Assembly (NCBI GenBank): GCA_965112735.1
Contig: OZ218953.1
Coordinates: 5,146,001 to 5,210,000 of the forward strand
Direction of reading: 5' to 3'
Length of the DNA: 64,000 nt
Source: Phaeosaccion multiseriatum
Taxonomy: Eukaryota; Protista; Ochrophyta, other classes
Shown: positions 6,001 to 30,000 of the stretch, piece after piece
Layout: every line of letters begins with the position of its first letter
Position numbering within the stretch: the first letter of the stretch is position 1
Program-made: the position numbers and the translations under genes
The notes under the pieces: generated by a model
The model's input: only the letters and a program-made list of their open reading frames with translations
Told to the model about the DNA's origin: nothing
The model's database searches: none

Positions 6001-9000
6001 GTGTACAAGGTTCAAACCACGCAAGACATCCCTTACGATGCATCTGCCGCCGACGTCAAGGCCGCACTCGAGGGGCTCACGGGCGTTTGTTCGGTGGATG
6101 TGGACAGAGGCGTCAATGGCAACGGCTTCCAGTGGCTTGTCACCTTCGCCAGCAGTGACTCGGAGTCGGAGTCGGAGTACCAACAGCAGCAGATGCTTCG
6201 TGCGATGCGTGCCAACGGGGTTCAGCTCGACGCGATGGCAACCTACGTCGAGCCAGATGTCAGCGTGGTGGGAGTGGGGCGAGACTTACTCTACACCAAC
6301 ATGTCAGGGGTGCCGTACTACGTCCGTGCCTCCGCCCTCAACAGCGTAGGCCTCGGACCCTCGAAGGCGAGCTCTCCAATCAGCCTGCAGCCGGCCCCTC
6401 AGCTGCCATCCGCGGTGCGCAGGTCCAGTGTCTCTGTGGTTTCCGACTCCGAGGTGCGAGTAGAGTGGGAACCCCCTCAGCAAGACGGCGGGGCGGAGGT
6501 AACAGAGTACCTGCTTGAGTGGGACACATCCAAGACGTTCGACTCCGGTTCGGATGGTAACCCACGGGGCTCCGCTGTGGTGTACGCAGAGGACTCCGAG
6601 GAAGTCATGGACGTACAGACCCTTCGCTTCTCTGTGGACGGGGATGCCTATGTCGCAGGCAGCTTCAGCCTGGTGTTCGCCGGCCAGACCACGGGCGAGA
6701 TTGCCTACGACGCTACTGCGGAGACGGTAGAGGACGAGCTGAATGCCCTCTGCACTGTAGGAGAGGTGTTCGTTACACGAAACTTGGGCCCTGCTTCCGG
6801 CGGGCACTCCTGGATGGTGACCTTTGCGAACATGGCATACACTGGCAGTCAGCAGAACCCCACCACCAGCGCTTTGCAGACCAGTTACGGACACAAGCTC
6901 AGCGCTGTGGGGGACCATCTGCTGGTGTGTGACTCTGCCGCACGGGAGAATTGTGTTGGCGACGGCGCGAGGACGAGTCTGGTTGTGGAGTCCAAGCAGG
7001 AAGTGCAGCGTCTTCGTTGCGAGACGAGCGCGAGCGAGTTTAGCATCTCCTACATGGGACAGAGTACTGCAAACATCACCACTTCAAGCGGGTATTCTGT
7101 AACCGCCATCGAGGACGCGTTGGAGGCGCTGAGCAACTTGGGCGACGTAACCGTCGAGCTCAGCAACGGCGCTTCGGCACTCACCTGCACAGGAGAGTAC
7201 ATCATCGTCACCTTCTCCACGGCGCTGGGAGACGTCCCTCCTCTGTCCAGCAGTCAGGATGGAGACTTCGAGCAAGTCGTTCAGGGCTCGGCTCAAACCA
7301 CCGTAGGACGTATGCCTTACTCCTACCTCATTGACTCAGTATCTTCTGCCTCTTCTCCTTGGTACGTTCGTGTGGCTGCCTTCTCGAGTATCGGGTACGG
7401 GGAGTGGCAGCTCGCCTCACAGGACGATAGAACGAGCGTGTCGCCCAGCCAAGCCGCACCGCAGATGGCACTGGACGTGAGTGCGGCCGTGGCGAGCGAA
7501 AGCACGGTATGGGTGTCGTGGAGTCAGCCGGAGAGCACGGGTGGCGACGACGTTGACTACTTTGTGGTGCAGTGGGACACCCTCGACACCTTTGACAGCA
7601 CCTGCGGGGATGGACCGGAAGTTCAGACCCTCACCATTGCTTCGGAGGATCTACTGGACGCGAGTAATGCCTTCAACATTAGCGTCAATGGGCTTGAAAT
7701 CGCGTCTTGTATGGCCTGGAACAGCTCTGCCAGTACTCTTGAAGCAGCTTTCCAGGACGCCTCCTCCGCACTGGGACTCGTGACGGTCACACAGGGTGGC
7801 GACGGCTCCAGCGTGTGGTCATACGGCGTGTCCTACAGCGTTACCTTCAACTACAACAGCACGGACGAGGCGCTGCCCGACTGGCCCGAGATGGTGGTGG
7901 CGCAGTGCGAGGGTGGAGCGGGCAGCATGAATCTGACGGTTACCACGGTGGCCGACGGAACCACGGGTGCCTCTTCCGACTGCCAGGCCGGCTCTCTCAC
8001 CGCCTTTGGACAAGCCAAGGTAACTGAAGCCGACGCCTTGGCCATGGCCGCAGCGATGGCAGCAGATGGAGACACGACGGCTACAGACTATGCATACATG
8101 ATGACAGGACTCGATCCCCGAGACTCATACCACGTTCGCGTGGCGGCGGTCAACGGTTACGGGCAGGGCTCCTTCAAGCGGGCCGAGGAGGCGGTTGTCC
8201 CCTACGCCACCCCCACGCCACCTCGCAACACAACTGCCTCCGCCCTTACGACGGGGGGTGTGCGAGTGGACTTTGCCCTGCCGGAGGACTATCGAGTGGA
8301 GGGCAGCAACGGAGCCACAGTGGAAGGCTATCGGGTGAGCTTGTTCTCGCGAGTGAATGAGGTGCAGACAGTCTCTCTCTACGGCAAGCCCTCTAGTGGC
8401 AGCTACCAGCTGAGCATGGGCAATGCCTCCACATGGTGCATTGACGCAAGTGCGTCTGCCGATGACGTGGCCCTTGCTCTCGCTGTCCTCCCGCTGGTGG
8501 ACGGAGTCACTGTCAGCAGCGGCAGCAGCAGCAGCAGCAATTCTAGCAGCAACTCCAGCAGCAGCAGCAGCACAGACTACACGGTAACATTCGACGGCCC
8601 TGATCTCTGCAATGGCGACATGCCCGAGCTGGGAGCGAGCGTCTGCGCCACTCTAGGAGGAGGAGACGTGTCTTCTTCGTACTACTACGTTGACGTTACG
8701 ACCGTTACGGAGGGTGTGGCCGGCGCCGTGCGACCTGTGGTGACTGTCTCCATAACCGCGTCTTCTTCCTCCTCTTCCGTTTCGGGCTTCTTTGTGCTCT
8801 CCTACGGTTACGACTCCGCCCCCCTGAGTCTAGCACTGGGTGGGGAGGACTCCGCAGCTTCGGGAGGGGTGCTTGTCTATGTGGCGGCCGGGTCCAAGGT
8901 TGTCTACTCCACAGCAGATCTATCCCACTATCTCAATGCGGGGGACAGCGTGAGCATTGACGGCGTGCCAGTGGTGGTGGCGGGAGACTTCTTCTGCGAC

Positions 9001-12000
9001 AATGAAGGTGTCACAAACGGTGACGACTACCCCTGCACCTTTACGTTGGAGTCTTACCACCCCTCCGGAGCCAGCGACATACTCATCTATGGCGCTGCCA
9101 ACTCGCTCGGGCAGGGAGACGTAGCCGAGGGAGACACAAGCGTGCTCACCAACTGGGACCTAACCAGTCTGGTGCAGGCTGGGGAAGGAGTGGTGGTATA
9201 CGACCCTACAGATGGCAGTGTCATGGAGGTGTCTGTCGACAGCCTCTCCTCCTCCGAGCTCACCCTGGCCTCGGCCTATACCGGCGGAGACAATGTGCGT
9301 GTGAGCTTGATGGCCAAGAACCGCGTGTTGCTCGCTGCCGATGCCACCGCTGCTGAGATGGCGGATGCTCTCTACGAGGGGTGGGGGATGGCAGTGGACG
9401 TCTCCAGGGTAGGACCTGCCGCGGATGGCAGCTTGGTGTGGGAGGTGACCTTCACGGACCACTCCGGGCCCCTCACCGCCCCCTTCAGTGTTGATGTCTC
9501 GGGCTCAACCGCTCGCTACGTCGAGGCCTCCTGCAGCGGCAGTGGAGGAGCAGGCTTTAGTGGAACGTATGCTGCCACCGGTGGAATGTACGGAGGCCGG
9601 GCAGAGTACACGGCGCTCAGTCTGCCGTACTCTATGCTCTTCAATGACACCACCTCTTCTTGGGCCATTGTGAGTACGGACAATGTCGCCGTCGCCAGCG
9701 GAAACCCAACCGCCAGCATGGTACCGGCCAACATTAGCGACTGCACGCTCACCACAGGAGCAAGCAGCGGCGGTGCCCTGCTCACCCTCCTGGAGGGCGG
9801 CGACGTTTCGGTGGAGGTAACGCAGACCGGGACAGCTCCGATCCTCACTTCACCCGTGCGCTCCTTGCTCAGCAAGAGCGGGGGCGCGGAGGTGCAGGTG
9901 ATTTCCCTCACAGCGGATGCGGACAGTCTGGACGGGACCTTCGAGGTTGACTTTGGGGGGGCAGGGGGCTTTGAGGCAGACTGGGATATGAGTGCCGCTG
10001 ACATGGAACTCCGTCTGGAGGAGTTGCCCACCGTGGGAGATGTAACCGTCACCAGGACTCCAGCCTCTGCGGTCAATGCAACGGCCCACGGCTTCTCCTG
10101 GTTCGTGACCTTCAGCAGCATGCCGGGTAATGTGAATCAGCTCTACGTCGACGGTAACTCGACGGCCGTACCTCTCGCCGGTAGCGGTGTGGAGCTGACG
10201 GTTACGGAATTGATCCGCGGGCAAGAGCTGACCTTCTCCGCCGAGTTTGAGGGTGTCCCTGAGGCGACTTACCACGCACACGTGGCCACATACAGCTCGG
10301 CCGGAGAGGGAGAGGCTACCCTTGTCAAGCCCCTCACGGTGTCCGCCAAGCGAACCGTTCCTGCACCGATCATCAAGTCGGTGACGGCGCTCTCGGCAAG
10401 CCAGTTGGAGGTCGCGTATGACCACCATGTGGACTCGGGAGAGACCGCGACCACCGACCTGGTGCTCGAGTGGACTACGGACGACGACTTTGGCGACGGC
10501 GTGATGAAGAAGGTGATGGTCACCAACACGGCAGGTAGCAACGACACAGAGGGCTTCTTCCGCCTCCAGCTGGGCGGTCGATACACGCACAAACTTCTGT
10601 TTGATGCCTCTGCTGCTGATGTACAAGAGGCCCTTGAGGAGCTGTCCACCGTGGGAGAAGTCGAGGTGCAGCGGTTGGTTGACCAGGCGGGTGACGGGTA
10701 CACGTGGGTGATCGCCTTCCCCGATGCTGTGGGCCCCATGCCCAAGGCGGGCTACGGTTGTCTGGACTGCGTGGTGTCGACCAACGGCTCCATGTCCTCC
10801 AACTCCAACGACTCTACATTTGCGCTTGACATGGACCTCACAGATGTCATCTATGTCGGTGATCGCTTCACTCTGGAGTACGTGTCCGACGGCAACAGCA
10901 GTAGCAACAGCAGTTGGTCATACAGCAGCAGTGGCAGCAGCGACTTGGACACGGAAGACGGGTGCTACCTTCGTGTGGAGGAGGTGTCCGCAAACAGCAT
11001 CACCTACACGCCTCGACCGGGCTGCAACGCCAGTGTCGACTTTGCCAACGCCACTATGGCCATCAAATTCAGCGACCCCCTTGGCCTGAGTGTCGAGTCG
11101 GTCAACTTGCGATCCGTCAGCGATGACGGCGTGCTCTCTACTTTCGTGGTGGAGGAGCTGGCAGGCGCCTACCCGGCCGTGTACGGCACTCTCCCTCTGT
11201 CGGCAGAGGAGGATTGCGGGGACATTGTTGTCACCGACTCTGCCCCTCTACAGCGACTCACCCTGGCCGCCAATGACTCCGTTGTAACGGCAGGCAGCTA
11301 CCGCTTGGAGCTGGATGGACTTCTCACCGACTGCCTTGCCTACAACGCCACTCCAGCAGAGGTGGAGGCTGCTCTCGCGGGTCTGCCGAACGTTGATCAA
11401 GTGTCGGTTTCGGGGCGTATCTTCCTGGAGAATGGGGCCTACTATCCCGTCTCGGAGGCCAACAAGATCACGGACTTGTTCGGTTACGACATGCTCATTC
11501 GCTTCTGGGGCAGCTACCAAGGCAGCGCCTCTGCTTGGCCGCTCCTTCGAGTGCCACCTGCTTGGTTCGGAGTGGACAATGGCGACGCCCTGGCCTGCGA
11601 GGCCTTTGAAGGAGGCAACGCACACAGTGCCAGTGTGGTGGGCATCCTCTCCAAGGGGGCTTGCGTGGAGGGTAACACTGCCTCCCAGGTTATCCTGGCC
11701 GAGGCAGAGAGTGACCTAGGCGGCAGCTTCTCGCTACTGTACAAGGGCGATGTGCTGTCGCTTGATGCCGTGCCCTTGGACAGCACCGCAGCTGAGATGG
11801 AAGCTCTGCTGGCCGACGCCATCAACGCCACCGTTACAGAATACGCCTACGGTACCTACGGAAAGGCCTGGGAGGTGACCTTTGACGACAGCATGGGAGG
11901 GCCTCAGGACCGACTGGCGCCGTGCGATCGCTTCACGACTGGAGACAATTCCGTTGTGGGTGTATTTGAGTCAGTCACGATTACCACCTCGGCCGATGTG

Positions 12001-15000
12001 CACTCTCGAGACGACCTCTCGGGTCACTTTAGACTCCGCCTGGGGCATGAAGTAACGGACAAGATTGCGGTGGGTGCCTCAAACGGTCGCGTGGCGGAGG
12101 CCTTGCACAAGCTCTCTGGTGTGGGCAAGGTGATCCTCGCCACCCCTCTCAAGGCGGTGGGGGCTGTGCCCATCGGCTCGGTTGTGGCGGTCAACGGCTC
12201 GTCGCAGGTGTCCGCCGCCGGAGACCTCTCCAAGAGCGTTTCACCCGGCGATGTGTGGATCTTCAGCGAGGAGGCAAGCACGCCTGCCTACTACTCGGTT
12301 TCCGATTTGGTGTATGACAACAGCACCAACAGCTCGACGCTCGTGACGCTAAATCGCACGGTGCTGTTGGACGGCAACTATTCGGCGGAGGTAGGGGAGG
12401 TGGCGATGGCAACCAAAGCTCTACCCGGCTCTCTGTTCATGGAGAGCCCGGTGAGTCTGATGTACAGCTTTCCTGCCAGCGAGGACGAGGCCGCCTCCAT
12501 TCAGCTCAGCTCGGGCGGGGTGAGTGCCCTCAACCTGACCCTCAACAGCTCTATTACCCTCGAGGGAGCGGTCTATACCGTGATGGACTACGCCTCCGAT
12601 ACCGTGACGCTCGACAGAGACTACGAAGGAACTGCGGTGAGCAACGGAGACGTTAGCATCAAGGTGTACCTACCTGAGATGACCGCATACTACACGCAAG
12701 ACCTGTCGGCCTGGATCAGCGCGGGGGACACGCTTTGGGTGGAGAATGGATCCGGCGATGTGGACGAAGTAACGGTTGTGAGCATGGGTGCAGACAGCGG
12801 GTGGAACACCAGCTCTCTCGTGCTCTCCGGTGTCTTTACGAGCGACTACCCCTCCGGCACGACGGCCTTTGTGTCCAGCAACGGTTACACGTACCACCTT
12901 GTCTTCAAGGAGGCCATGAGCGCCGACCTGACTGGACTACAGGTGGAAGTGGAAGACGACTTCCTGGGCAGTGGCGCGAGGGTAGAGGTCCGTCGCCCGG
13001 CTGGTGTGGCGGCTCGCACCGTCTCGCTGGGCTCTCCCCCGGAGGTTCAGACAGTCGCGCTGAGAGCGAGTAAGATATACTGGGCGAACGTCAACGCGGC
13101 CAACAACAAGACATGGACTCTGTCTGTGTGGGGTGAGGAGACGGAGGAGTTGGTGTGGGGTGCGTCTGCCGAGACGGTGCAGATGGCACTGGAAGGCCTC
13201 TCTGCGGTGGAGCATGTCGAGGTGGAGCGCAGTGGAGACGGAGAGAGCGCGGAGTTTTTCTACGGTTACATTTACACGCTTCACTTCTGGGGAGTGTACG
13301 CCAGTGCAAACCTCCCCGAGTTGGTGGTACAGGAACAAATGGCAGGCACGGTGGCCGTTGTGGACACCGTGCGAGAGGGTTCGGCAGCCGGCAACACTGA
13401 CCACCTCTCCTCACTCAAGCAAGACACATCCTACGCCCTGCGTCTGCGTGTAAAGAATGGCCTCGCCTCGGACATTGTAACCGCCTCTACGGCCGCCGTC
13501 GGAGTCGTACCTTCCGCTCCCACCGCCCTCGAGCTGGGAGCGTGCCACTACGGGGAGGATGAGGTGGCGGTCGAGTGGCAGCCGCCCTTCTCCGACGGTG
13601 GACAGCAAGTGGATGCGTACCGGCTGGAGTGGGACTCCTCGCCACTCTTCTCCGATGCCTCGGCTGACTACGGCACTGACTACTTGGGCGTGGTGCATGA
13701 GGTACAGGAGGTGGTGGTCAACTTCCGGAGCGGCGACTCTGTGACCACCCGGGCAGGCACGTGGACACTCAGCTGGGGCGGCATGCAAACCGCTCAACTC
13801 GCCTGGGACATTTCGGCGGAAGGGCTTGAGTACGCCATTCATGGTATCTCTGGCGCAGTGGACATTGGACACAATCCCGTCGCGGTGACTCGTGTTCCAT
13901 ACCGTAACGGTTACAAGTTTACTGTGCGCTTCATGGCCTGGCGCGGCAACCTCGCCCTTATGGAGCCCGACTTTACGCTGTTGTTTGGCGACGACCCGAG
14001 TGTGACTGTAGTGGAGGCCGTGGCGGGGCAGGCGGACATCCACCCTGGGGACTTTACTTTGGAGGTACAGAGTGTGAGCATCGAGGCCAACAGTAAGGTG
14101 AATGGGTCCTTCACGCTCTCCTTCGAGGGCCGTGAGACCGAGCTCATTGCTCACGACGAGGGCGCGGAGAGCTTCAAGTCCAAGCTGGAGGCGCTGTCTT
14201 CAATCCACTGCGGCGATGTGGAACGGGTGCTACTGGATGAGGACCTGGAAACCTACGCCTGGAGAGTGTCGTTGGCCTGGCTCAAGGATGAGCTTGTGCC
14301 GGGGGCGGGTCGGCTTGGTCTGTTGGTGGTGGAGAACGAGAGTGGATTGAGTGGCAACAGCGTGGCCGTTCGGGTGAGCGAGATGATCGAGGGCACCAAC
14401 CCCTTGACTTACTCCATCACCGGACTCACAGCTGGCGAGACGTACTACGCACGGGTGGTGGCCCACAACAGTCGCGGCTTCGGTGAATACGGTTACACCA
14501 CTTCTGGCGTCCCACGAGCACAGAGTGAGGCCCCGCAAAACGCCACCCTCGCCATTGCCTCAGGTAGCAGCTTGCTTGCCACGTGGTCGCCGCCGGCCTC
14601 CGACGGCGGATCGGCGGTTACAGGTTACCGAGTCGAGGTGTCTACCGCTGCTGGAGTGAGTGAGGTACAAATGATCACCACGTCAGCCAAGAAGGGTGTG
14701 AGTGAGGTGCAGAGGCTGTCTGTGCGAGCCGACGACAACAACTTGGGCGGGTACTTTACCATCGCATTGGAAGGCTACACCACGGGCAACATTGCCTGGA
14801 ATGCCGGGGCGACGGGCACGGACTCCGTGAAAGAGAAGCTCGAGCGCCTGCCCGCCATTGGAGAAGTTGACGTGGAGCAAGACTACAGCAGGAGGGCAGT
14901 GTCAGGACTGTTGGTGGATGTCATGGAGGGTGCGAACAATGCCACTGCGAGCAACGCCTCCACGGTCCTGCCCAGTCAGGTGCTTGCCGAGAACGATATC

Positions 15001-18000
15001 ATTTTTGTGGCTGGCTACCGAGCCCGCGTCAAGGGCTTCAGCAGCGATGGCACTACCGTTCTCTTCGGTTCCCTCTCCAACTACCTCACGGAGGACTTGT
15101 TCGACGAAGGAGACGGAGCAGAGGGCGTGATTGTGGAAAAGTGGGCCTACGGTTACGAGTACCTCATCACCTTCACCAGCTACAACGGCGACCCTCCTCT
15201 GCTGGAGCCCTCCCCCAGCGATGGTTGGGCGGGCACCAACCCCACCCTCGACGTTGCCCAGGTTTCTCGCGGCCTACAACCCATCAGCGGCACCTTCCGA
15301 GCGGCCTACGAGGGCGAGAAGACTCGCCCTTTACCGCACGACATCTCAGCTGAAGCCCTGGAGGCTGCCCTTGAGGGACTGGCCACCGTGAGTGACCTCA
15401 GCGTGACCAAGGTTGTCAACGGTTACGGTTTCAACTGGATCGTGACGTTTGTGGGCGAGCCGGGCGACGTGGAGATGCTGAGCGTGGACGGAAGCGGCCT
15501 CACGGGACCCTCTGCGTCTGTGAGTGTTTCCGTGGGACAAGTAGGCGAGCTCGCTGACGGGTACGCCGCCGTCGATGTGAGCGCCTCTACACAGGAGTAC
15601 CTGCTTAGCGATCTCATCCTCGGCACCCCATACTGGGTGCAAATTCGCGCCATGAATGCTGAGGGCCTCAGTCCGGCAGTGATGACAGCCCCGGCCAAGC
15701 TGGCCCCCATGCAGGCGCCCGGGGCTCCGGAGGACGTCGAGCTCATTGTCATGTCAGATTCGATGCTCAAGGCTGTGTGGGAAGCCCCCACCACTGACGG
15801 AGGACAGGCAGTGACCCAGTACCGAGTAGAGTGGGACGTCTCTGCCGACTTTGCCAACATTGCCACGTCTGGGTTCTACCACGAGATGCGGGTGCCATCT
15901 TCCGACGTGGATGGAACTGCCACCACGGGTCCTTTCTACTACAACATTGTACTACCTGCGAGCAGCTCGAGGTTCGCCCGTTACGTGCGCGTCAAGGCGA
16001 GCAACAGTTACAAGTGGAGCGACTATGCCTACTCCGTTCCTGCCAGCGCTAGCCCGACTCGACGCCCTCCGGGTGTCGTGCAGAACCCCATGCTGACGGT
16101 AACGAGTGGTGTGGGTCTTCTCGTCGAGTGGGAGGCGCCGTCCACCGAGCTGACGGTGTACGGCGGGGACGGAGGCAGCAGCCTAGAGGAGTACCTGGTC
16201 GAGTGGGATACTTCGGCAAAGTTCGACAGCCCAGCCCGCAGAGCCGTGGTGCCGCAGAGCCAATTGAGCCACCTCATCGGCGGTAGGGACCTTATGACTG
16301 GGGAGGAGAGCACCGAGCTGGAGCCGGGGGTGACGTACTACACTCGGGTGAGTGCGTACAACTCGCTCGGGTACAGCGCCACGGCAGCCACGGAGCCCCT
16401 CTCGGCCACCACGGAAGATCAGATTCCGACGGCGGCAGCGATGCTGGGCGCCTCGACGGTGGGAGCGCAGAGTGTGATGGGCATGTTTGACACGCCCTCA
16501 AGGGACGGAGGAGAGACACTGACCAAGTACAGGCTAGAGTGGGACACGGATGAAGACTTTGCTCACATCAACGGCACGAGTCGCTCAGGGGGGTGGGCCG
16601 ACGTGCCACTGGTGCAGGAGGTGGCGAGTTTTGCCCTGTCGAGCACGGTGCAGCAGGAGGAGCAGTGGGTGATTGCAAGTGTGGAGGTGACCAACGAGAA
16701 GCAAACGGTACGCACGCAGGTGACGGGGGTGGACGAGGTGCAGCTTATCGTCACCTCGGCAGATGCCGTTCAGCCCAACGTTCAGACCATCACCACCTAC
16801 GCCAGCGATTTCGACGAGGTGCAAGAGATTGTGCTTGATGCGGACGATGTGGACGAGTGGCAGTACGTCTACTCGGAAACCGAAGAGGTGTATGAGGTGC
16901 AGGTGTTGACGGTTTCAGCCACCCGCGTCAACGAGGTGCAGCAGCTTACGGTGACCTTGACGGGCAACACGACGGACGGAGGGCAGGATCTCATCGATGC
17001 CGCCAACGCTTACGTAACGGTTGAGTTTGAGCTCGATAGCACCAACATGGACTGGGCGTGCGTCAAAACCACGGAAACCTCGGATGCGGTGGAGGCCTTC
17101 AACGACACTGACGGGTCTTACCTCCGTACGGCGCTCGAATCCCTCAGCAACTTGGACAATGTAACGGTCGAAACCGCCGGGTGGGCGCTGGTGACCAATG
17201 ACGGCTCCACAGGAGAGGTGGAGATGGTGTATAACATTACCTTCGATGGCGACTGCACGAGAGGCAATGTACCCACCGGGGACTTCGTGGTGGACACGTG
17301 TTCCACAGCCACGGACCCCTCCGGGAAGCTGGCTTCTGTGGGGTGCGCTCTCAGTGTCATCACGGAGGGCAACGAGCCGTCGGGCTCCTTCTATCTCACC
17401 TACCACTGCGAGGCGACTCGCTACGAGGGGGTGGGCAACATGACTGCCTCGAGCGATGTGCTGTCTCTTCTCAACAGCACCGCCACACCGATGGTTGGCG
17501 ACACGATGCGCGTGAATGACTTGGGCCTGAGTGAGCTCAACACGGATTGGAGCTACTTCCTCGTGGAGAGCGTGGAGGCCATTTCTTCCACAGACTTTGA
17601 TGTGACTGTGGACAGCGCATGGACGGGCAGCGACGGAGCCTTCCTTGTGCAGTTTGGTGACTTCTACTCCGACCCTTCCAGCTCCTACGGCGTGTCTTCC
17701 TCCTGCCTCACAGCGGATCCGGACTTCACCAACAACCCTCTTGACTACAAAGCAACCGCGGCGGAGCTGGAGGAGGAGCTACAAGGTCTGGCGCAGCTCA
17801 ACAGCACGGCAGGCTGTCTCGGCGTGGTGAGGGACGACATCCCTGCAGGCACGCTCATTGACTTTGGCGGGGCATCGGGTGCAGTGGAGGTGATTGGTTA
17901 CACCTACAACCTGACCTTCTACTGCAGCAACGGGAATGTGCCGACGATGGCATGCAACGCCTCGGGTACGAGTCCTCTCACCGCCACCAACGCCGACATG

Positions 18001-21000
18001 GACGCGCTCACCGCCCCCGAGGGGAAGCAGTGCCAGATTACGCAAGAGCTAGACGGCGCTATCCTCAATGGGACGTTCGAGCTCGGTATGACCTGGCCTA
18101 TTAAACAGGAGGGCACTCCGGAGCTGCTCAACTACACCACAGGGGACATGGACTGGCGTGTGTCGGCAGCGGACCTTGCTACTGCGATGGAGAACGTGAA
18201 GGACGAGGATGGCAACCGAGTGTTTGGCTCGGTCAGCGTGGATCGCTCTGTCTATTGGCCCAACGGCGACTACAAGTGGTCAGGGCAGTACGTGTGGAGC
18301 GTCACCTTCGACTCCCGACCGGGAGATGTACCAGAGATGCTTGTCAATAGCTCTCTCTCCAACAACCGCGGCGGGGCCACCAATGTAACTGTCCGCACCG
18401 ATCGGCAAGGCAATGAGATTGACGGAGGATTTGGACTTACCTTCTGCGACACGAACGATGTGTGCACGTCGACAAACTCGAGCTACTTTGGTGCCTATCT
18501 GAGTGAAGACGAGATGCGGTTCGAGATGAGCAGAGCCTTCTTCTCGATGGGCTCGGGCTGGGCCAATGTAACCGACGGAGCCGCGAACATCACCCTCACC
18601 TACAACACTACAGACAACGCCACCACGACGATCGATGCTCCTGTGGAGGTGACGTACTGGATGCTCCTCGACGGCAACTACTACCTGGTCGACGGTGTCA
18701 ACGGTACACAGGCCACGCTCGACTCGGATGTGAATGTGGATGCAGACGGGCTCTACGATATTGAGTACGGCATTACCGCGGTTTCCGTGTCGAGAGCCGG
18801 CCCCACCCAGGCCATGGGCTACACATGGGAGATTACGTTCAACAACAAGACGGTGGGAGGGGATCAATCCACCTTAACTTCCGAGTCGCAGAGCTTGACA
18901 GGGACGGGCGTCGACCTCAACATCGACGAGATCCAGCAGGGCAACCAGATAACGGGCACCTTTACTCTCGCTTACAACGGCGAGACGACCGTCGAGATCC
19001 CTTACGACGCTGACGCAGCTGCAGTGGAGAGCGCGCTCAATAGTTTGTCGAGCATCTACCCTTCGCAGGTTGAAGTAACCAGGAGCGCGGAGGCGACGGT
19101 GGACACGCAGCAGCAGGTGCTGGGCTACACATGGACGGTTACTTTCGATTCGGCCACCTGGCACGACCCCACTGACCATGACAGTAGCGAGAGCTACATT
19201 GACGGTAACTGGAATGGAGCAGCGGTGGACTGGGAGTCGACATGGGAGACCACGGGAGAGGGCCGCTTCAGCAGGGCCTGGGGACGCAACGTGGGCAAGC
19301 TCTTGGCCATGGAGTGTTCTTCGGACGGGCTGGGAACCACACGATTGGACGGGTCAGAAGATTGTGCGGTGGCCATTGTGGAAGAGGGAAGTAACCCGTT
19401 GGGCGGCTCCTTCACTATAAGCCTGGACACCAGAGGGCATGCGGTCATGTCTGCTGACGCCCTCTGCACCACAGGGGACATTGCCCATAATGCGTGGGCC
19501 TCGGCGGCCGAATCGGATGGGGATGGTACCTCCCTGGAGGAGATATTGGAGGCAACGGACTGCGTGGGCGACGTGGAGGTGTCGCGTTACGACGTTAACT
19601 TGGGAGGCAACAACGGGGGTTACGCTTGGTTGGTCACGTTTGTGCGCGATGCGGACAGCCCGTGTCAACAGTACGATGACGACACAGGGGAGTGCAATGC
19701 GCCCGGAGATGTGCCCAAGTTCAACTCCAACCTTACGGATACTTCGGACCTCCTGGGCACCAGCATGCGCAACGCCGACTCGACGACCGATCAGGGTGTG
19801 GTGACACTCCTCGATGTGAGTGATGGCAACGTGTCTGCCCCTGGTGTGGCGTCTGTGCACGTGATGCGCGTGTATGATTTGGCCTACGCTGCTTCGGACC
19901 GCTTCGACAATGAGCCCAAGTTCCTGCTTGAGCTGGGCGGCAACGTCAGCACCACTTGCTTGCCTTGGAACGTTAGTGCTACAGATCTGGCAACGGCTTT
20001 GGAGGAGGCGTCGCCCGAGTACGCCGCTGGAGTGGTGGTGACGCGAAGCATCCCTCCTGACGACGAGATCTGGGGCCTGCCTTCCACGTCGGCGCCCAAC
20101 GGGTACTCGTGGACCATTCACTACGTGGGCTACGAAGGACCAGTCCCGGAACTTTCCTTCCAGGCCAGGGACACAGGCTGTACCACCAACGGCACCGCCG
20201 CGGACTTTGTTGACTTCCAGCGAGTCGACGCGGTGGTCAAGGTGAACGGCACTTCCTCTCCTTTGACCTGCGACAGCGAGGGTTGCGTGGACGGGGTGGT
20301 GCTACGCGGAAACTTTACAGCGTGGTACATTGATGGCGACGACGACACTGGGGCAGGTTGCAACAACACGTACATCTTGCCTTGGAACGCAGAGACGAGC
20401 GAGGTGGAGGCGTCCATTGAGGCGTGCGGCAACAACTCTCGGCAAGTCGATGTGTCTCGCACTGTTCTGGACAAGTACGGCTCGGTGGAGTGGGTGGTGA
20501 CGTTTACCCAGAACCCTGGCGAGACCCCCCCGGGTGCCGGAGATGTAGATACCATGACCGTCGAGCAAAATCTGGCGGGTGTGGGCGGCTACGCTTCGCA
20601 GCCAACCGTTACAGAAACTCTCAAGGGCTCCACCTCCCTCAGTGGTACGTACAACCTTGACTACGACTCTACAGATGGCGACCGCCAGCTCAGCTTTGAA
20701 GAGTCCGCCGAACGTATAATGCGTAAGCTTGAGGAGATGAGCACGGTCTCCGAGGTGCACGTGGAGAGAGAGGAGTACCCCAGCAACTCCACCGGTGGGT
20801 GGGGAGCGATGGCAGTGGACGCGGGCACTCAGGGCGGTTACGTGTGGAAGGTGCGCTTCCTCAGTGTACCTGGGACGTACGGAGGCGAGACCTTCCCCGC
20901 CGGATCGGGAGACGTTGATGCACTCGTACCGGACAGCAGTCTGGCAGGAACGGGTGCGGCGGTGGTGGTAGAGACGGTGACGGAGGGTAGCGACGAGATG

Positions 21001-24000
21001 TCAGGCAAATTCTCACTCTCTTTGGACGGACAGACCACAGAGCTCATCAGTTACACGGCCGATGCGACTGCAGTGGAGGCGGTGTTGGAGGACCTGAGCA
21101 ATGTTGGTGCCGTGAGTGTTGACTTTGATTACTACACCGCCGAGCGCATCCCTGGAGTGTCTGTCTATGTCGGGCGAGACGCCTCAGGGGCCACGCTGGA
21201 GGTGAGCGGTACAGACAGGAAGCTGCGCAATTACCTCGCTGCGGGCACCCTGCTTCGACTTGGAGGGCAGGACGTTGAGTCGTCAGGCAGTCTGAGCGGG
21301 ACCAACGGAGAGACACTACTCGACGAGCCAGGAGGCGTGGGGCACATGGTGGACGTGGTGAGCGGGTCTCCCCTCGTGACCACGGACACCGAGCTGAGCG
21401 ATAGCGTGGTTGCCGGCATGGAGGTTCGCCTGGCCGGCGATGTGTACTCGGTTCGTCGCACAGGGGTGGAGGTGCAGAAGCTGACGCTGCTCTCGGGGAG
21501 TGGGGGCGGGCAATACAAGCTCGCCTTCACGCACAACGGCTTGCTCAACGCCACCACTGAGTGTCTGGACTTTGATGCGAGCGCAGCGGTGCTGGATGCG
21601 GCGCTCGAGGCCTTGACCAACATCGGCACCGACCAAGTGGTGGTGACGCGGACGGGAGCCGACACCAAGGGTCGACCGTACACGCACAGCATCTACTTTG
21701 AGGGCAGTGACGTGCATGGAGATGTCAATGAGCTGGTGGCTACGCCTTGCTCGGGCAGTGAGGACGTGGAGCTGAGCGTGCAGACGGTGGTGCAAGGCGG
21801 GGGCGTGGAGGTGCAGCGTTTAACCCTCGCCACCGACGCGGGCTACATTGTGGGGGAGCACTTTACGCTGAGCCTAGGGGGAGGAGCAGGCGGTGCCAAC
21901 TACACCAACGACACGACGGGATGCTTGGAGTGGGGCATGGAGGCGACTGATCTGGCCGCGCAGCTGTCTGCCCTTCCCAGCTTGAGCCAGTGGGAGGTGG
22001 AGTCTCTGTCTCTCAACCTGACAGAGCTCTATCTGTCGCCCTCCGCCACCGTGCCGCTCTCCAATGGCACTTTCGTCCAAGGCCGTCTCTCTGCCGGAGA
22101 CGTTATCACTGTGCAGGGCAGTAAGAAGGAGGGAGCCACTTACACGGTCGATGAAGTGGACGAGGACGGTGCCTTCATCGTCCTCACCGAGACACTCTTC
22201 GCCTCTGCGTCAGCCAGTGGAGAGGCCAAGGTCACACTACAGCTATTGGATGCAGTCCAAGTGCAGAGAGAGGGGACGGGCAAGTCCGTGGTGGAGGTGC
22301 AAACCCTCTCCGTCACTGCGTCTAGTGCCATCTCGCCCCTCTCGGACCAGGACCAGGACGGGCTCTTCCGTCTGAGCTGGACGCACGACTCGGAAAGCTT
22401 GCTCACCGAGTGCCTACCCTACGGCGCGTCTGCCGCCACGGTGCAAGCGGCTCTAAACGGCTTCCTACTGGACCTCAACAACGACGGATTGGTGGACGAG
22501 GAGGATCAAGACCACATCATTGTGACCCGTGAAGGGGACGCCTCTGCTGAGTACGGTTACGGCTATGAGTACACCTTCACCTTCAAGGGTGTAGCGGGTA
22601 TCTCGTCAGTGGTTGGTGACGTCAATGAGCTACAAGTGGTCGATGTTGGTGCGGCGAACGGCTGCTCTGACATCGGTGGCATGGAGACGGAGATTAGCGG
22701 GCTGACGGCGGTTACGAGCGACCTATCCAGCACAATTGTCCCATCCTCCGACGCCAGCTCCATCCTCGTGCCCGGCGATCGAATCCGGATCAGCACCAGC
22801 GAGGACCCGTTCCGCGTGTACACCGTGGAGAGAACGGTCGGTAGCGAGGCGGTGTACCTCACGGAGCTTTTCCAGAAGAACATGACGGACACGGATTCGA
22901 ATGCTACCATCACTCTGGTGGCGGACGGGCTTCCGGCCTTTTCTATGCTCACCTCTGCGAATGGGCAGGCAGCCTTCACCTACGACATTATGTTTGTGCA
23001 TCCTTGGCTCGCCGGGGTGGACGAGCTGGTGGTGGGTAACGAAGGGGAGGGAGAGTGCCAGAGCGGAGACCACACCGACTCCGACGCCGACGAGTGGACG
23101 TTCTACGCGGGTATGCGCAGAGACGTAAAGGTGGCGACGCTGAGCGAAGGCGGCTCCGATGCGATCCTCTCGCTCATGCTGGAGAGTTCGGTGGAAGCGG
23201 GTGGAGTGCCGGCGGACGCGTCCTTCCGCCTCTTCGTTGCCTACGATGGGGCCTACCAGCGACTGCTTTGTGGGGACTGGAACACGTCGGCAGAGGACTT
23301 GGAGATGGCCTTTGAGAGCGTGCTGGGGGTGGAGCCTTCGTCCGGTCAGGTGATGGTGGAGGTGGAGGGCTACGGCAATGTGTCTTCCAACTACGGCAAC
23401 ACACTGCGTGCCACGCTCAGCGGTGACCTCTTGGCTGGAGACGTAGACGTGCAGCTTCTTCGCTCCCGCTACAATGCGGACGGTGACATTGTCACCGATA
23501 TGCCCGTCATCTTCTCCGGTCTGGGAGAGGGTGATGACGTGTCGTTCACAGCCAACATGAGCGCTAATGCCTCTGCCACTGTCAGTGATGCCGTCATTGT
23601 TGCTTCCTACGCGGAGGCAGACAGCGGCAGCGGCAATTCAACGGTGCTACACTACAGCATCAATGCTACCATGTGGGCCATCTCCGACGGCAGCGCCACG
23701 GAGGTGAACCTTTCCGGAAACTTTACGAACACGGATACACCCTTCAACGTGTCTCTGACGGCCGACTTGGGCGTGGAAGTGGTGGTGACGTTCAACGACG
23801 CCGATGGGCTGGTCATTGGGGACGAGTACACACTCCTGCTCTCTTCTTGTGGACTGACCGACCCCATCCCGTACGGAGCGAGTGTCAGCCTCGACCTGGT
23901 GGCGGGGAGCGCGCAGCAGAAGCAGCTGACTTTGGACCGCCCCTACGAAGGCAGTGAATCTACCTCTCAAGAGGCCTACCTGGTGCCACAAACGTTCCGA

Positions 24001-27000
24001 GTGAGAGAGGCGGGTACGGAGGTACAGACCATCATTGTGCAAGACTCAGGCGACAGCGTGTGGGCCAACGGGGACCCTCAATACCGCCTTACATGGGGAA
24101 GCGGAAACACCACCGACTGCCTGGACTGGGATGCACTCGATTGGGAGGTGGAGGAGGCGCTGGAGACTGTGGGTCTGGAGGGACTGACGGTGACGCGTCG
24201 GGAAGACTCCACCTTCGCCCCCAACGGTTACATCTACTCCATCTACTTCTCCAGCGAGGCGTACGACGCTTCCGATGTGGCCGACCCGTACACCCTCAGC
24301 GATGGGGACGGAGGAGGAGGGCTGAATGTGAGCTATGCTGGCTGCAGTGCTGCCTTTGAGGCGGACTCGGGGGAGACGGTGACCTTGGCCACTGTGGTGC
24401 AGGGCAGCAGCGATGGAGGCATCTTTACGGATGAGTGGGTACCCCTTGCCGAGACGAGCGACAGTACCGTCTCGGCGCGATTCCTGGGAGGAGACGGGAC
24501 CAAAGCCCTTTCTATCTACCGTGTGACGGGTCATCTCTACACCGTGAGCTTCGACAGCAACCTCGGAGATGTGGATGCATTGGTGCCTGGGGTGGAGTCA
24601 CTGAGTGGTACCGATGCGGCAGTGACGGTGTTCGAAGAGGAGCTGCTGGAAGGCTACCTGCCCACAGGGTTCGTGGCGGAGGGCTTGCAAACGGGTCTAC
24701 CCTACCATCTGCGCGTGTCGGTGGCCAACAGCCTGGGCTACGCGGAGTACAGTAGTGATACAGTCGTCGCCAAGGCAGCTTCCGCCCCTTCTGCACCCGG
24801 CTCGCTGGAGGTGGAAGAGGCGTTACACGAGGACGAGGTGCAAGCGATTACGGTGGCGGCGACCCATATCGACGAGGTGCAGGTGATTCGCACCTCCGCG
24901 CCGTACATTACGGATGTCCAGCTCGTGACCACCAGCGCCGAGGAAGACGAGCTCGTGCGAGGGTCCTTTGCGCTCAACTTCCCGGAGGTTCAGCGCGTAA
25001 CGGTCGGCGCTTCTGCCATGTTCGACAATGGCAGTTACGCACTTGTCTACACCAAGCACGTGTTGAGCGGCAACGCCCTGACGCCCACCAACGAGACCTC
25101 CGTGTGCCTGGCCTGGGACGCTACTGCAGCGGACGTGGAGAGTGCGCTGGAAGACCTGACCTACATTGATGATGTGGCGGTGGTACGCAGCGGCGACGCG
25201 TCAGACAGCTCCGACTACGGCTACCACTACGACATTAGCTTCATCGGACTGGAGGTGGTGGGCAACGTTGAAATGCTCTCCGTGAGCAACGACTCTTCCC
25301 TGTGCACTGGCCTCAGCGCTGTGGGCGGAGGGTCGACTTTCGTCCGCGTGGTACAGACCAGCGCTGCCGGAGGAGCCGTTGGTACTGCCACCGCTGTTCA
25401 GCGTGTGAGCCTCTCTTCGGAGGTGGAGCTCACCAGTGGCGTGGGCGCCTACCGACTGGCGCTGACGTTGTCCAACTCGTCGACGGAGGTGGCGCTAGAG
25501 ACGTCTTGCATCGCGTGGGACGCTGAGGCAGGGGACATGGAGGAGGCATTGGAGGGGCTTGCCGTGGTGGACAGCGTACACGTTACGCGCGAGGACAAGG
25601 CTTCTTCTTCTGATTCCGATTCCGATTCTGCTTCTTTGGGTTCGGGCTACACGTGGAGTATCTTCTTTGACGGAAACGCCATGTACGACTCTGACATGGA
25701 CGTGGCGATGGAGGCCAACCTCACAGCGTGCAGCGAGTTTAGCACCACCATTGACGAGGTGCTCACCCCCATCACGGACAACAGCACCTACTCCTACTCC
25801 TTCTCTGTGTCTCTCTTGCAGAGTGGAGGGCTAGATTTGGATTACAACGCCCCTGCTTCAGACCTGACCGAGCAACTGGGCCTGCTGCCTGGCGTGGAGT
25901 CACCACTCATCATCTACGAGGGTGCACCGGACGAGCAGGAGGGACAGTCGTGGACCATGTCTTTCGGTGGCAACGACGGAGATGTGCCCCAGATGGTGTG
26001 TCTATCAGACACATCCTCCTCGGGCGACTTTGTCGGGGAGTGCGAGGTGGTTACTTTGGTGGAGGGCAACGAAATCGGAGGCTTCTTCTACCTCAACGAC
26101 ACGGATGGCATCGCCAGCGACGCCTCTGCCTCCGACATGGCCGCCGCCCTCGAGGCTTCCGGCTTGGGCGAGGTGAGTGTGAGCAGAGAGACCACGGACG
26201 CACGTGGAGGCTACGCCTGGAGCATCACCTTCTTCGACTATGAGGGAGACGTGCCCGCGCTCGCAGCGGACTCGGATATGAGTGGTTTCGACGTCGAGAT
26301 TACCACGAGTGAGGCGGTCAAGGGGAACGCTCTTGGGGGAACCTTTTCGATGGCACTCAACGGTTACGTAACGGGCGACTTGGCGAGCGACATTAGCGCG
26401 GAGGACCTCCAAACGGCACTGGAGGGACTCGATACAGTGGGTATGGTGGATGTGGAGCGGAGCGCGCTCTCGAGCGAGGGTGGCAGCACTTACCTTGTTA
26501 CCTTCCGCGACACCATCAACCCCGGGGATGTTACGGCCTTGGAGGCAGACTACAGTGAGACACTGACCGGAGAGGGCGCGGTGGTGCTGGTGAGAGAGGT
26601 GATCAAGGGAAGTGAGGCAGTGGGGACCATGGCCAAGCTCAGCTTCGAGGCTCCTAAGCAATGCTCCACCACCAAGGTGGAGCTTGGCGACTGCGGAGAG
26701 CCAGTGGAGTACTACCTCGTGGAGTGGGACACGAGCGATACCTTCAGTTCAGCGGCGCTGCGCTCACAGGTACTCAACGACACGGATCTTCTCTACCGCG
26801 TGCAGCGTGTCACCACCACGGCAGACAGCGTCATGTCGGGCACCTTCCAACTCAGTCTGGGCGGTCAGACCACGCAGAGCATCAATGCCAATGCCTCCAG
26901 CGAGGAGTTGCGAGTGGCTTTGGAGGCCCTTCCCTCGGTCATTACCACCCTGGACGTGAGCAGAGACTACTCCATGTACATTTGGGAAGGACACCTCGTA

Positions 27001-30000
27001 CGCGTGACGTATGGTGGGCAGTCCATTGAGCTCTACGGCAACGCTACGGACAATGCCCTTGCGGCCTGTGAGTTGATTCGCTTGGATGACGAATGGTACC
27101 GGGTCGACGATTCGTACGACAGTGAGTCCAGCACCGTGAGTCTGGCCCAGGTGCACGACTGCAGCGTGGCCAAGAGCTACGAAGGGTCATCGGGTACCGC
27201 GGTGGTGGAACGGTGGGCAAACGGTTACGAATGGAGCGTCACCTTTGCGTCCGCCGCGGAGCCCTTGCAGCTGCTGCAGAGCCCCATGCCCAAACTCTAC
27301 CCGGAGGACAGCAGCGTGTTGTACATTCGGGGCGCCAACTGTGACGGCTGCTTCTACCTCCCGGATCTGACCATGGGAGAGACGTACTACGTTCGCACGC
27401 AGGCCTACAATGAGTTCGGTGGAAGCCCCCTGGGGACCGCCAGCTCTGGCGACGGCGTGATGGAGGTGGTGCCCAACCAGGTGCCCTTCGCTCCTGAGGA
27501 TGTGAGCGTTACGGTGGTGAGCGGTAGCAAGCTAGAGGCGTTCTTCTGCGAGCCTCTCATCTCTTCCGACGACGTTTGGGGCTTCCGCGTCCAGTGGGAC
27601 GATGTGAGCTCCTTCGCCAACGCCACCTACAACGACGATGCGGGTTGTACGAGCGTGGGCTACGGTAGCTGTGTGGTGTCGGGTAGCGCGATTGCGGGCG
27701 AGTGCCCCTACTCGCTTGTTCTCTCGGACCTAACGGAGGATCAATTGTACTACGTGCGCGTGTCGGCGTTGGGTGAGGTAGATGCGCAAGCGGTGAGTCC
27801 CACAGGCGATCCGATCGACAACACAAATTGGAGCGGCACCATCGAGGCCACTCCTACGGATCAGCCTCCGAGCGCTCCTGGCACCATCTACCTCTATGTG
27901 CTGGACGGAAGCACACTCCAGGTACAACTGGCGGCGTCGACGGAGAGCGGAGGCAGCAATATTACGAGTTATGTGTTTGAGGTCGACACGGTGTCGACTT
28001 TCTCATCCGGGAGCCTAATGCAGACAGAAGTGGCCGCAGAGGATTTGTCGGAGCTGTACCTTGGCGGCGACTTGGTGTACAACATTGGTAACCTCACAGC
28101 TGGCGTATACTACTATGTGCAAGTCTCGGCTCAGAGTTCCATTGGAGGCAGCGATGCCACTCCGGCCTACAACAACCCAGTGGCGCCCACACAGCTCCCG
28201 GACCCGCCCACCAACGGAGAGGTGGAGGCAGTGGTGGTGGGTCTTGATGAGTTCAACACCGATCTGAGCGTTACATGGGCTGCCCCGGAGGACAATGGGG
28301 GCTCTCCGACGACGGGCTACCGAGTCGAGTGGTGGGAGAGGGACACGTACCGCGAGGAGGTGCAGATTGTGCGAATGACGTGGGACGACAACGACGAGCC
28401 GTCCAGTACCTTCCGTCTGTACTTTGACGGAGTGAGTACCAATGTCGGGCTGGATGCGGATGTCAGTGAGGTGAATCTACGCGACGCCCTCATGAACATC
28501 AACTCCAACACCACCTTCCCGATTGGCCATGTAACCGTCAACCGAAGCACCATCAACGGCGACGAGGGCTACGTCCACACCATTACGTTCAAGGATCAGG
28601 TCTCCAACCCCGGAGACCAGCCACCCATCCTGGCGGCGGACACTTTCGAAGGTTCAGCGAGCATGCGAGTGTACGAGTTGTACAGCGGTATCCGCGCAGG
28701 AGGAGCTCCTGAGATTCAAATCATTCGCTCCTCTGGCAGCGGCACGGGACTGCGCAACGCGTCCGATGTGGACGATGCGGTGGTCAAGGGGTTCTGGAGG
28801 GTTCAGTTTGCGGCCAGCAACTTTAGCACCTATGTGAGTGCCAGTGCGACGGCCGAGGAGGTGGAGGCCATGTGCCAGGGCCTGTCCACCATGGGGGACG
28901 TGGATGTGTCGCGGGAAACCAACGACGAGAATGGCTTCGACTGGGCCATCACCTTCACCTCACCCGTGGGAGATCGCGGAGGGATCGAGGTGGACGACGC
29001 CTTCCTGTGGACGTCCAACGACGATGCGGCCATTGTCGTCTACGATGGTGACAACGAAATCTCGTCCACGGATGGCAGCTTGGTGTGCAGCGGGTGCCAG
29101 GTGGGAGAGACGCCCATGGGCTACAACTACGCTGACCTGTCGGCAGATGAGCTTGCCTACACTATCACCGGGCTGACCACCGGCGTAGTGTATGAGGTGA
29201 TGGTGTCTGCAATGAACAAACACGGTCAAGGGGAACGCCTCTCGGCCAGCGGCGGCATTGAGCCACCCCTCGCCGTGCCGAGCGCCCCCACCAATGTGAC
29301 AGTGGATGTGAAGCCTTACAACGAGACGGTTGGCGACGGCATTGGCGACAGTCAGCGCCTGTTGGTGAGCTACGGAGCTCCGTTGTCCGACGGCGGCTCT
29401 GCGGTTACGTCGTACCTGGTGGAGCTGGACCCCACACCGACGTTCGACGACCCCATCAGTGAGGTGTTTGAGTGCCCCAACGCACCCGCCTACGCCACTT
29501 GGGTCATTGAGACGAACACCAACGCCACCATCACGGGGGGATACTTTGAGCTGGAGCTCACCAAGGGAGGCTTTGCGCTAGTGACCGATCTCATCCCTTA
29601 CAATGCCAAGTCATTGGCGGAGCAGGAGACTCCGGACCAGATTAGCACGGCGAGTGGCGTCATGTGCGAGAACGACGCCGGGGACAACGACGACGTGTGC
29701 CCTGACGACAGACGGGAGGCGAGCGGCTCTCTCCAGTCCAAGCTCAATGTGCTGGACACGCTGGACGATGGCGTGTTGGTTTCGCGCCAAGGGTTGGGCA
29801 GTGGGCAGTACCGCTGGACGGTCACCTTCCTCGACGTTGGCGACGACTTTGAGTTTGAGAGCACCACCACGCGCAACTACCTCAACACTACGGTGGGGGG
29901 GCAGACTTCCGTCACCGCCACCAAGATTCAGACCGGAGTGGACTATGGAGAGTGTAGTGGTGACATGATCATGCCCACGGAGGGCGGCCTGGTCAAGGGA

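Follow-up and report, generated by a model that had tools for sequence, protein, structure and literature searches.

In this study, we analyzed a 64,000-nucleotide stretch of the genome of the ochrophyte alga Phaeosaccion multiseriatum (GenBank assembly GCA_965112735.1, contig OZ218953.1, positions 5,146,001 to 5,210,000; hereafter, the window), which carries a giant gene for a protein made of FN3 domains and many copies of a second domain, here called the EVQ domain. The region at window positions 16456..24774 very probably encodes a side arm in a secreted, "bottle-brush"-like giant of a stramenopile alga, an arm in which nine EVQ domains are inserted recursively, each within the last, in a single FN3 domain. 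We show in silico the parts of this arm, their order and counts, the reverse-order dependence of its strands on its bodies, and their conservation. The initial annotation of the window had proposed that the loop behind strand 1 of one domain receives the whole of the next; structure predictions now support this proposal together with the reverse pairing that it entails, since bodies 9 to 4 order strands s4 to s9 and bodies 9 to 7 order strands s7 to s9.

The gene (7..31134) comprises one open reading frame with 10,375 codons and lies on the forward strand, as do all features described below. It crosses the left edge of the window, so that the protein is longer than 10,375 amino acids (aa), and its G+C content is ~60% along the whole gene. 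Over aa 5001-8667, Pfam recognized fn3-type families only and left the ~110-aa repeat without a match at E ≤ 0.01, and NCBIfam gave no match; the fn3 family (PF00041) scored E = 2.3e-12 for the stretch, with a neighboring intact FN3 domain as its best match. Atlas clusters of relatives are labeled "hypothetical protein," mostly without a Pfam family. Profiles were built from the protein itself. The EVQ-domain profile, iterated from one repeat as seed, found ~51 copies of a ~109-residue domain in the reading frame, with the elements b1 (EVQxLxL), b2 (GxFxL), b3, helix (SAxDLExAL), b4, b5 (YxWxVTF), GDVP, b6, b7, and a terminal G. By DSSP of AlphaFold2 models, its fold is alpha/beta and not Ig-like. 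The E/Q conserved in strand 1 raised the idea of an ester or isopeptide crosslink within the chain, which we do not claim. The FN3 profile, made from the protein's own FN3 domains, gave ~39 matches, many of them to an N-half or a C-half only. These halves alternate almost perfectly over the whole protein, and in roughly half of the FN3 domains at least one EVQ domain interrupts the fold after strand C; besides the FN3 domain that holds the arm, ~15 are split at the very loop used there. Because of this alternation and of the frequency of such splits, the FN3 domain with the nine-strand stack is an extreme case of the protein's general plan.

The arm starts with an FN3 N-half (strands A to C/C′; 16456..16605, aa 5486-5535), which matches FN3 profile positions 3 to ~48 and bears the motif SVMGMF...DTDEDF at nt 16471-16560. 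It ends with the corresponding C-half (strands E to G; 24655..24774, aa 8219-8258), which matches positions 55-90 and bears the motif GLQTGLPYHLRVSVANSLG at nt 24682-24738. The two halves lie ~2,700 aa apart and match the profile in the right order. The alternation of halves and the ~15 other domains split at this loop indirectly support their predicted closure into one seven-stranded sandwich. From aa 5575 to 8181, the profile gave no FN3 match, in agreement with the initial annotation, which had seen no FN3 motif between the halves.

Directly behind the N-half stand nine first-strand motifs (nt 16615-16953). They were detected with an ungapped 12-column matrix tested against shuffles, which replaced a 12-residue hidden Markov model that was too weak. 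The first eight are lone strands, s1 to s8 (16612..16926, aa 5538-5642), at a pitch of 13 to 14 residues, and their glutamates are at aa 5540, 5553, 5566, 5579, 5593, 5606, 5619, and 5632; with the ninth, at aa 5645, the spacings are 13, 13, 13, 14, 13, 13, 13, and 13 residues. The matrix gave nine matches in these 120 residues against two to four per shuffled whole 10,377-aa translation. Strand 9 runs on into its own body, and the two constitute the innermost, contiguous domain, d9 (16927..17370, aa 5643-5790), which covers EVQ profile positions 1-100 and aligns structurally as one domain over the contiguous model range 108..255.

Eight strand-less bodies follow (starts at nt 17368, 18055, 18409, 18940, 19387, 20293, 20626, and 20986), each beginning at strand 2 immediately past the terminal G of the body before it. 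Body 8 (17371..18057, aa 5791-6019) starts with GSFYL right after the terminal G of d9 and has a small beta-barrel inserted at ~aa 5805-5890. Body 7 (18058..18411, aa 6020-6137) matches profile positions 7-109, and body 6 (18412..18942, aa 6138-6314), recognized by structural alignments to 8giu_1, 9khy_a, and 9cb9_A, has an extra segment inserted after its helix. Bodies 5 (18943..19389, aa 6315-6463) and 4 (19390..19827, aa 6464-6609) match positions 15-83 and 7-99, respectively. A side domain, complete but degenerate in its first strand (HVMRVYDLAYAAS; 19828..20295, aa 6610-6765; positions 3-102), then precedes body 3 (20296..20628, aa 6766-6876; positions 24-109), whose strand 2 is GVVLRGNFTA, and body 2 (20629..20988, aa 6877-6996; positions 8-109). 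Body 1 is itself divided into an N-part, from strand 2 to strand 4 (20989..21138, aa 6997-7046; positions 8-61), and a C-part with strands 5-7 (24508..24654, aa ~8170-8218; positions 64-105). The insert of ~1,120 aa in its strand 4-strand 5 loop (21139..24507) was delimited by profile matches and the token map and contains five EVQ domains that start at aa 7157, 7270, 7432, ~7725, and 8007; the earlier estimate of ~1,100 aa for this split thus holds.

Every motif and FN3 half that the initial annotation had quoted occurs once, in the order and at the positions it reported. Its heading counted nine strand-less bodies where there are eight, and its text, with eight such bodies plus one contiguous with strand 9, was right. 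The bodies it listed all stand, and its inventory was incomplete, as the complete domain at aa 6610-6765, the body 8 barrel, and the body 6 segment belong to the arm as well. Lone strands and strand-less bodies balance at 8:8 in this FN3 domain. In total, 13 strands were detected by the matrix and 14 body cores by the profile inside it; the numbers become 15 and 15 after addition by eye of two degenerate strands (aa 6620 and ~7725) and of the body 5 core, which the profile had missed.

The pairing of strands with bodies was examined by structure prediction. With aa 5486-6685 as query, phmmer found 1,050 matches with E below 1e-3 among 1.84 billion representatives, many of the matches being collinear over the whole stretch. 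MAFFT alignments were kept to collinear pieces; a first version with 114 homologue pieces had misplaced many short fragments, which were dropped. The AlphaFold2 model of construct 1 (aa 5536-6606; s1-s9 and bodies 9-4) had a mean predicted local distance difference test (pLDDT) score of 83. Its residues 1-40, which comprise s1-s3, were below 50 and had no secondary structure, and s4-s9 formed strands with pLDDT values of 81-95. Construct 2 (aa 5536-6137; s1-s9 and bodies 9-7) had a mean pLDDT of 83.5 and a predicted template modeling score of 0.77. Here, residues 1-76, or s1-s6, were at 35-53 without structure, and s7-s9 reached 91-96. Specifically, s4 was ordered (pLDDT 81) in the presence of body 4 in construct 1 and disordered in its absence in construct 2, and s3 was disordered in both constructs, neither of which contains body 3. 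The boundary of order was shifted by three strands when three bodies (6-4) were taken out, as had been predicted beforehand. Alignment depth over the stack did not differ between ordered and disordered strands and therefore cannot account for where the boundary falls. In these models, such a shift is the outcome expected of one-to-one pairing in reverse order and not of a self-contained sheet or solenoid.

This result bears on the view that the stack stands apart as an element of its own (a 13-residue beta-meander, a solenoid, or an extended linker, for example) and that the bodies are complete alone, for instance by use of the last strand of the preceding body. Even without strand 1, the strand-less bodies do reach good scores with the domain profile, and the last strand of a preceding body (e.g., VVVETVTEG) is patterned like an EVQ strand. 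However, s4-s6 became ordered only together with bodies 6-4 and s1-s3 never did, whereas a sheet of its own would not depend on bodies. The nine motifs did not assemble into a sheet or solenoid in the predictions of strands plus bodies that the initial annotation had called for. The 8:8 balance of the arm also speaks against a separate stack, as does the token map, which is consistent with 1:1 and 3:3 balances in two smaller clusters, one body start of the 3:3 cluster having been missed by the profile. Altogether, we regard a separate stack as very unlikely.

Single phage domains of known structure argue further against it, because they align over a strand and its distant body. With VIA-align, the contiguous ~90-aa domain 9d9w_Aa aligned in both models to the range 83..601, which spans s7 and body 7, with a root-mean-square deviation (rmsd) of 2.2-2.3 over 87 residues and Z of 9.2-9.6. 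Three others, 8giu_1 (Z 8.4-8.7), 9khy_a, and 9cb9_A, aligned to the range 69-71..777-778, corresponding to s6 and body 6, and 9d93_Ma aligned to 54..932 (Z 12.8, rmsd 2.8), approximately s5 and body 5, which it overran by ~4 residues on either side. As modeled, s5 + b5, s6 + b6, and s7 + b7 are discontinuous hosts, in which a complete guest separates an N-piece from a C-piece, the arrangement that defines a nested insertion. Since eight strands face eight bodies and the two truncations show the reverse order, the outgoing and returning pieces match in the way brackets do, equal in number and opposite in order. A whole-model Foldseek search against the PDB returned low-TM multi-domain matches only, and a search of AFDB clusters returned family members plus EGF, TIG, and FliD proteins without usable detail.

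Could the nesting be an artefact of modeling, the real form being a linear tandem array with local exchange of strands between neighbors? AlphaFold2 is able to put strands that lack a partner onto open edges of sheets, and alignment depth is low, with ~26 sequences over the stack. On the other hand, local exchange cannot use up eight strands that come one after another, ahead of every body, the order boundaries of two independent constructs fell exactly at the predicted strands, and the stack showed no indels in any of the 26 aligned family sequences. We consider such an artefact extremely improbable, and recursive insertion remains the reading that we prefer.

The architecture is conserved in relatives. 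Among 161 family proteins, strand stacks of 2 (53 times), 3 (34), 4 (17), 9 (34), and 14 (once) were found, so that the nine-strand stack itself recurs in 34 of the 161. The 14-strand stack, in a Joint Genome Institute (JGI) metagenome protein (P0012; 7,591 aa), is a genuine EVQ stack at aa 234-416 with the same 13-residue pitch. The stack in P0012 is followed by a long bracket-like series with nests of 3, 4, and 6. The FN3 context was examined in ten relatives in which a stack of seven or more strands was detected and an FN3 match lies further downstream. In nine of the ten, an FN3 N-half lies at most ~50 residues before the stack, and in the tenth at ~150. In these relatives, the next FN3 match after the stack is a C-half, 1,738-2,566 aa further on, and the bracket strings resemble that of the nine-strand arm.

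As the initial annotation had suggested, strand and body models were also run over homologues. Lone strands numbered 339 and strand-less bodies 369 over 62 proteins (r = 0.66), counts that are noisy; the outliers were sequences that end just past a stack or start after one. Within segments delimited by FN3, the counts in relatives were correlated but noisy. A permutation test of bracket order based on a never-negative depth gave no discrimination, divergent bodies being under-detected, and was set aside. Named relatives comprise Phytophthora cactorum, P. idaei, Aphanomyces astaci, Albugo laibachii (annotated "similar to titin"), and a fragment from the ochrophyte Phaeothamnion confervicola. 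The last is the closest, with 59-60% identity, and retains the smaller nests of the window. Since the module is present in oomycetes and in an ochrophyte alga, it probably predates the split between the two groups.

From these observations, the following architecture is proposed. The backbone of the protein would be a chain of FN3 domains, many of which carry EVQ-domain inserts in the loop after strand C. In the arm, this FN3 loop would hold domain 1, whose b1-b2 hairpin would in turn hold domain 2, with the pattern repeated down to domain 9. The outgoing chain would lay down nine first strands of 13 residues, one per level, complete domain 9 at the tip, and return through bodies 8 to 1, each of which would close on its own outgoing strand before the FN3 fold is completed last. 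The chain would cross every junction between levels twice, with both ends of the arm at its base, and these double connections are expected to stiffen the arm into a rigid one. From nine levels of 13 residues at ~0.33 nm per residue, the arm would be ~35-40 nm long, or ~4.3 nm per level. It would also be branched, by the complete domain that separates bodies 4 and 3, the barrel of level 8, the additional segment of level 6, and the five-domain branch of ~1,120 aa in level 1. Because the sole contiguous domain sits at the tip, folding may proceed from tip toward base as the bodies emerge.

The protein may be secreted, given 154 N-glycosylation sequons (N-x-S/T) and 111 cysteines in the translated product and the types of domains present. 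Its C-terminal end is a run of intact FN3 domains, with no membrane-anchor-like hydrophobic segment seen in the last 420 residues. Judging from the sequons, the FN3 backbone, and the use of EVQ domains on the surfaces of phage virions and, by a weak match, among flagellar-hair proteins, it could serve as an extracellular structural or adhesive scaffold.

The same parts could in principle act between molecules, with the lone strands of one molecule filling the strand-less bodies of another and thereby polymerizing or cross-linking the giants into a matrix. Pairs are separated by up to ~2,680 residues, which would generally favor swapping, and the domain family is found in assemblies (phage virions and, weakly, mastigoneme proteins). 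Such complementation in trans is nevertheless quite unlikely, as strand and body counts are balanced within every FN3-delimited segment, the linkers, of just a few residues, have the length that insertion into a hairpin loop in cis needs, and the monomer models are confident. A milder form, in which strands and bodies that pair in cis also exchange between molecules as a runaway domain swap and zip the giants into a noncovalent extracellular network or hair, has a similarly slim chance of being right. If true, such exchange would be a eukaryotic, multi-strand counterpart of the donor-strand assembly of pili.

Several points weigh against recursive insertion in a secreted giant and should be read together. 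The structural evidence comes wholly from AlphaFold2, and contacts between strands and bodies were deduced from order or disorder and from the ranges of structural alignments. The s8-b8 and s4-b4 pairs were addressed by titration of bodies alone. The modeled span reaches from body 9 to body 4, so that the s1-s3/b1-b3 pairs and the reclosure of the FN3 domain over ~2,700 aa lie beyond it. Automatic counts in relatives are noisy, since they pass over divergent bodies and since many of the sequences counted are fragmentary. The N-terminus of the protein is outside the window, and we infer secretion from sequons, cysteines, and domain types. No RNA or protein evidence was obtained; the sequencing runs that contain this sequence are of unknown kind, with contig sets of approximately genome size. 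Searches of the literature and of sequencing runs found no data on localization or expression, and two papers on Phytophthora zoospores make no mention of FN3 giants.

The EVQ domain has relatives of known structure. In a search of PDB sequences with a profile of 15 canonical EVQ domains, 9d93_Ma, the tail tip cage/Dit protein gp23 of mycobacteriophage Bxb1, matched with three repeats at E = 6.4e-25, and the C-terminal domain of the Bxb1 major capsid protein (9d9w_Aa) matched at E = 7.6e-4. Our own EVQ profile gave E values of 1e-11 to 1e-14 per repeat on gp23, and VIA-align of 9d93_Ma with the arm models gave Z of 12.7-12.8, with 22-26% identity between the phage structure and the models. The EVQ domain is homologous to Bxb1 gp23 and has the same fold; the two share the motifs EVQ, GGTFTL, and NASxxDLxxAL and belong to one domain family. 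By profile, gp23 (gene 23 of Bxb1, 6928-8985) reads N1 N2 N3 C3 C2 C1, i.e., three b1-b4 halves followed by three b5-b7 halves. From this order, residues 269-608 of gp23 appear to form a three-level self-nest at the b4-b5 loop in a protein of solved structure. We did not find this nesting described in any paper; a paper on gp23 of phage Douge concerns a different gp23. In contrast to the arm, gp23 would have three levels at the b4-b5 loop, its outgoing pieces would be half-domains of ~58 residues rather than single strands, and it is a phage virion protein without an FN3 host.

A second likeness lies within the stramenopiles. The "Tubular mastigoneme protein" 9ufe_BA matched weakly (E = 0.006), sharing the strand and helix motifs over profile positions 2-100, and 9ufe_EA (OCM5) matched at E = 0.09, which is also weak. 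This marginal, near-full-length match hints, from sequence comparison, that stramenopile flagellar-hair proteins share the EVQ domain. Unlike the arm, the mastigoneme proteins are ~366 aa long, with apparently one EVQ domain, no FN3, and no strand stack. The canonical EVQ copies behind this profile include the one at 21466-21798. The barrel of body 8, ~85 residues at 17413-17670 (model residues 270-355), resembles the barrels of phage tail tubes, Dit, and EF-Tu domain II, with Z of 6-8.5. GD-rich motifs of the type GDxIxV...YxV recur in the branch at 21139-24507 and are like those in this barrel.

Nested chains that run out and back are known from other systems. In the outer domains of flagellin and FliD (D0-D1-D2-D3), the chain runs to the tip domain and back, so that the basal domains are made of N- and C-terminal segments. 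FliD and flagellar chains were among the structural matches to our models; however, these proteins have three to four levels of unlike domains on helical, polymerizing bases, without recursion of one family. Extracellular nesting with a head on a two-pass stalk occurs in integrin beta (PSI > hybrid > beta-I) and in pneumococcal RrgA (D1 > D2 > D3), where two to three levels of unrelated domain types are involved. Literature searches on nested adhesins and on the mastigoneme structure (PDB 9ufe) gave nothing usable.

The initial annotation had compared the arm with donor-strand complementation in chaperone-usher pili. The comparison is only a loose analogy: in both, a strand from elsewhere in the sequence completes a beta domain that would lack it, but the arm would consist of ordinary discontinuous domains made by insertion. 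In those pili, an Ig-like pilin lacks its C-terminal G strand, and the next subunit supplies one in trans after exchange with the chaperone. In the arm, by contrast, the strand concerned is the first of an alpha/beta, non-Ig-like domain, supplied in cis with balanced counts, so that the defining features of donor-strand complementation are lacking.

The initial annotation had further known of no description of such an arm for this family, a view that calls for qualification. In a survey of 48,551 insertion events, the deepest nesting was six levels, in Si3 of cyanobacterial RNA polymerase (PMC13114784), and gp23 appears from the order of its sequence matches to be nested three deep; the extreme form seen here is new. 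The hybrid motifs of Si3, in the beta′ subunit of RNA polymerase (rpoC2; AFDB A2C6T1; PMC13114784), share with the arm the self-insertion of one small beta-rich family in an A1-B1-C-B2-A2 pattern and the presence of branching nodes. Si3 has six levels and 8-10 domains in an intracellular enzyme, whereas the arm has nine levels plus the FN3 host, in another family and an extracellular-looking protein. Furthermore, all insertions of the stack are at the b1-b2 hairpin, and the outgoing halves have shrunk to bare 13-residue strands, of which P0012 has 14. With ten levels counting the FN3 host, the arm would be the deepest domain nesting that we found described.

If true, the comparison would stand at ten levels against the six of the deepest case surveyed (PMC13114784), with stacks of 14 strands among relatives. 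The layout shows that first strands can be buried up to ~2,680 residues from the rest of their domain. It lends itself naturally to testing in which order the domains fold (presumably tip to base), how far contact order can extend, and how rigid two-pass rods and branched scaffolds might be designed. The unnamed domain family ties virion proteins of actinophages to a stramenopile-wide giant of oomycete pathogens and algae and, more weakly, to flagellar-hair proteins. It may also give a handle on what is predicted to be a major, uncharacterized surface protein.

Elsewhere in the protein, a second insertion site, b4-b5, is used in the ~1,120-aa branch of body 1 and in a domain at aa 4902-5091. 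A small nest at 14554-15702 consists of two strands and two bodies within one FN3 domain, and another at 24781-26616, between FN3 domains, combines two complete domains with three additional strands and as many strand-less bodies. The regular alternation of FN3 halves is broken solely at 8040-9890 (aa ~2715-3296), between the C-halves at ~aa 2715 and ~aa 3431, where an N-half went undetected and may be degenerate.

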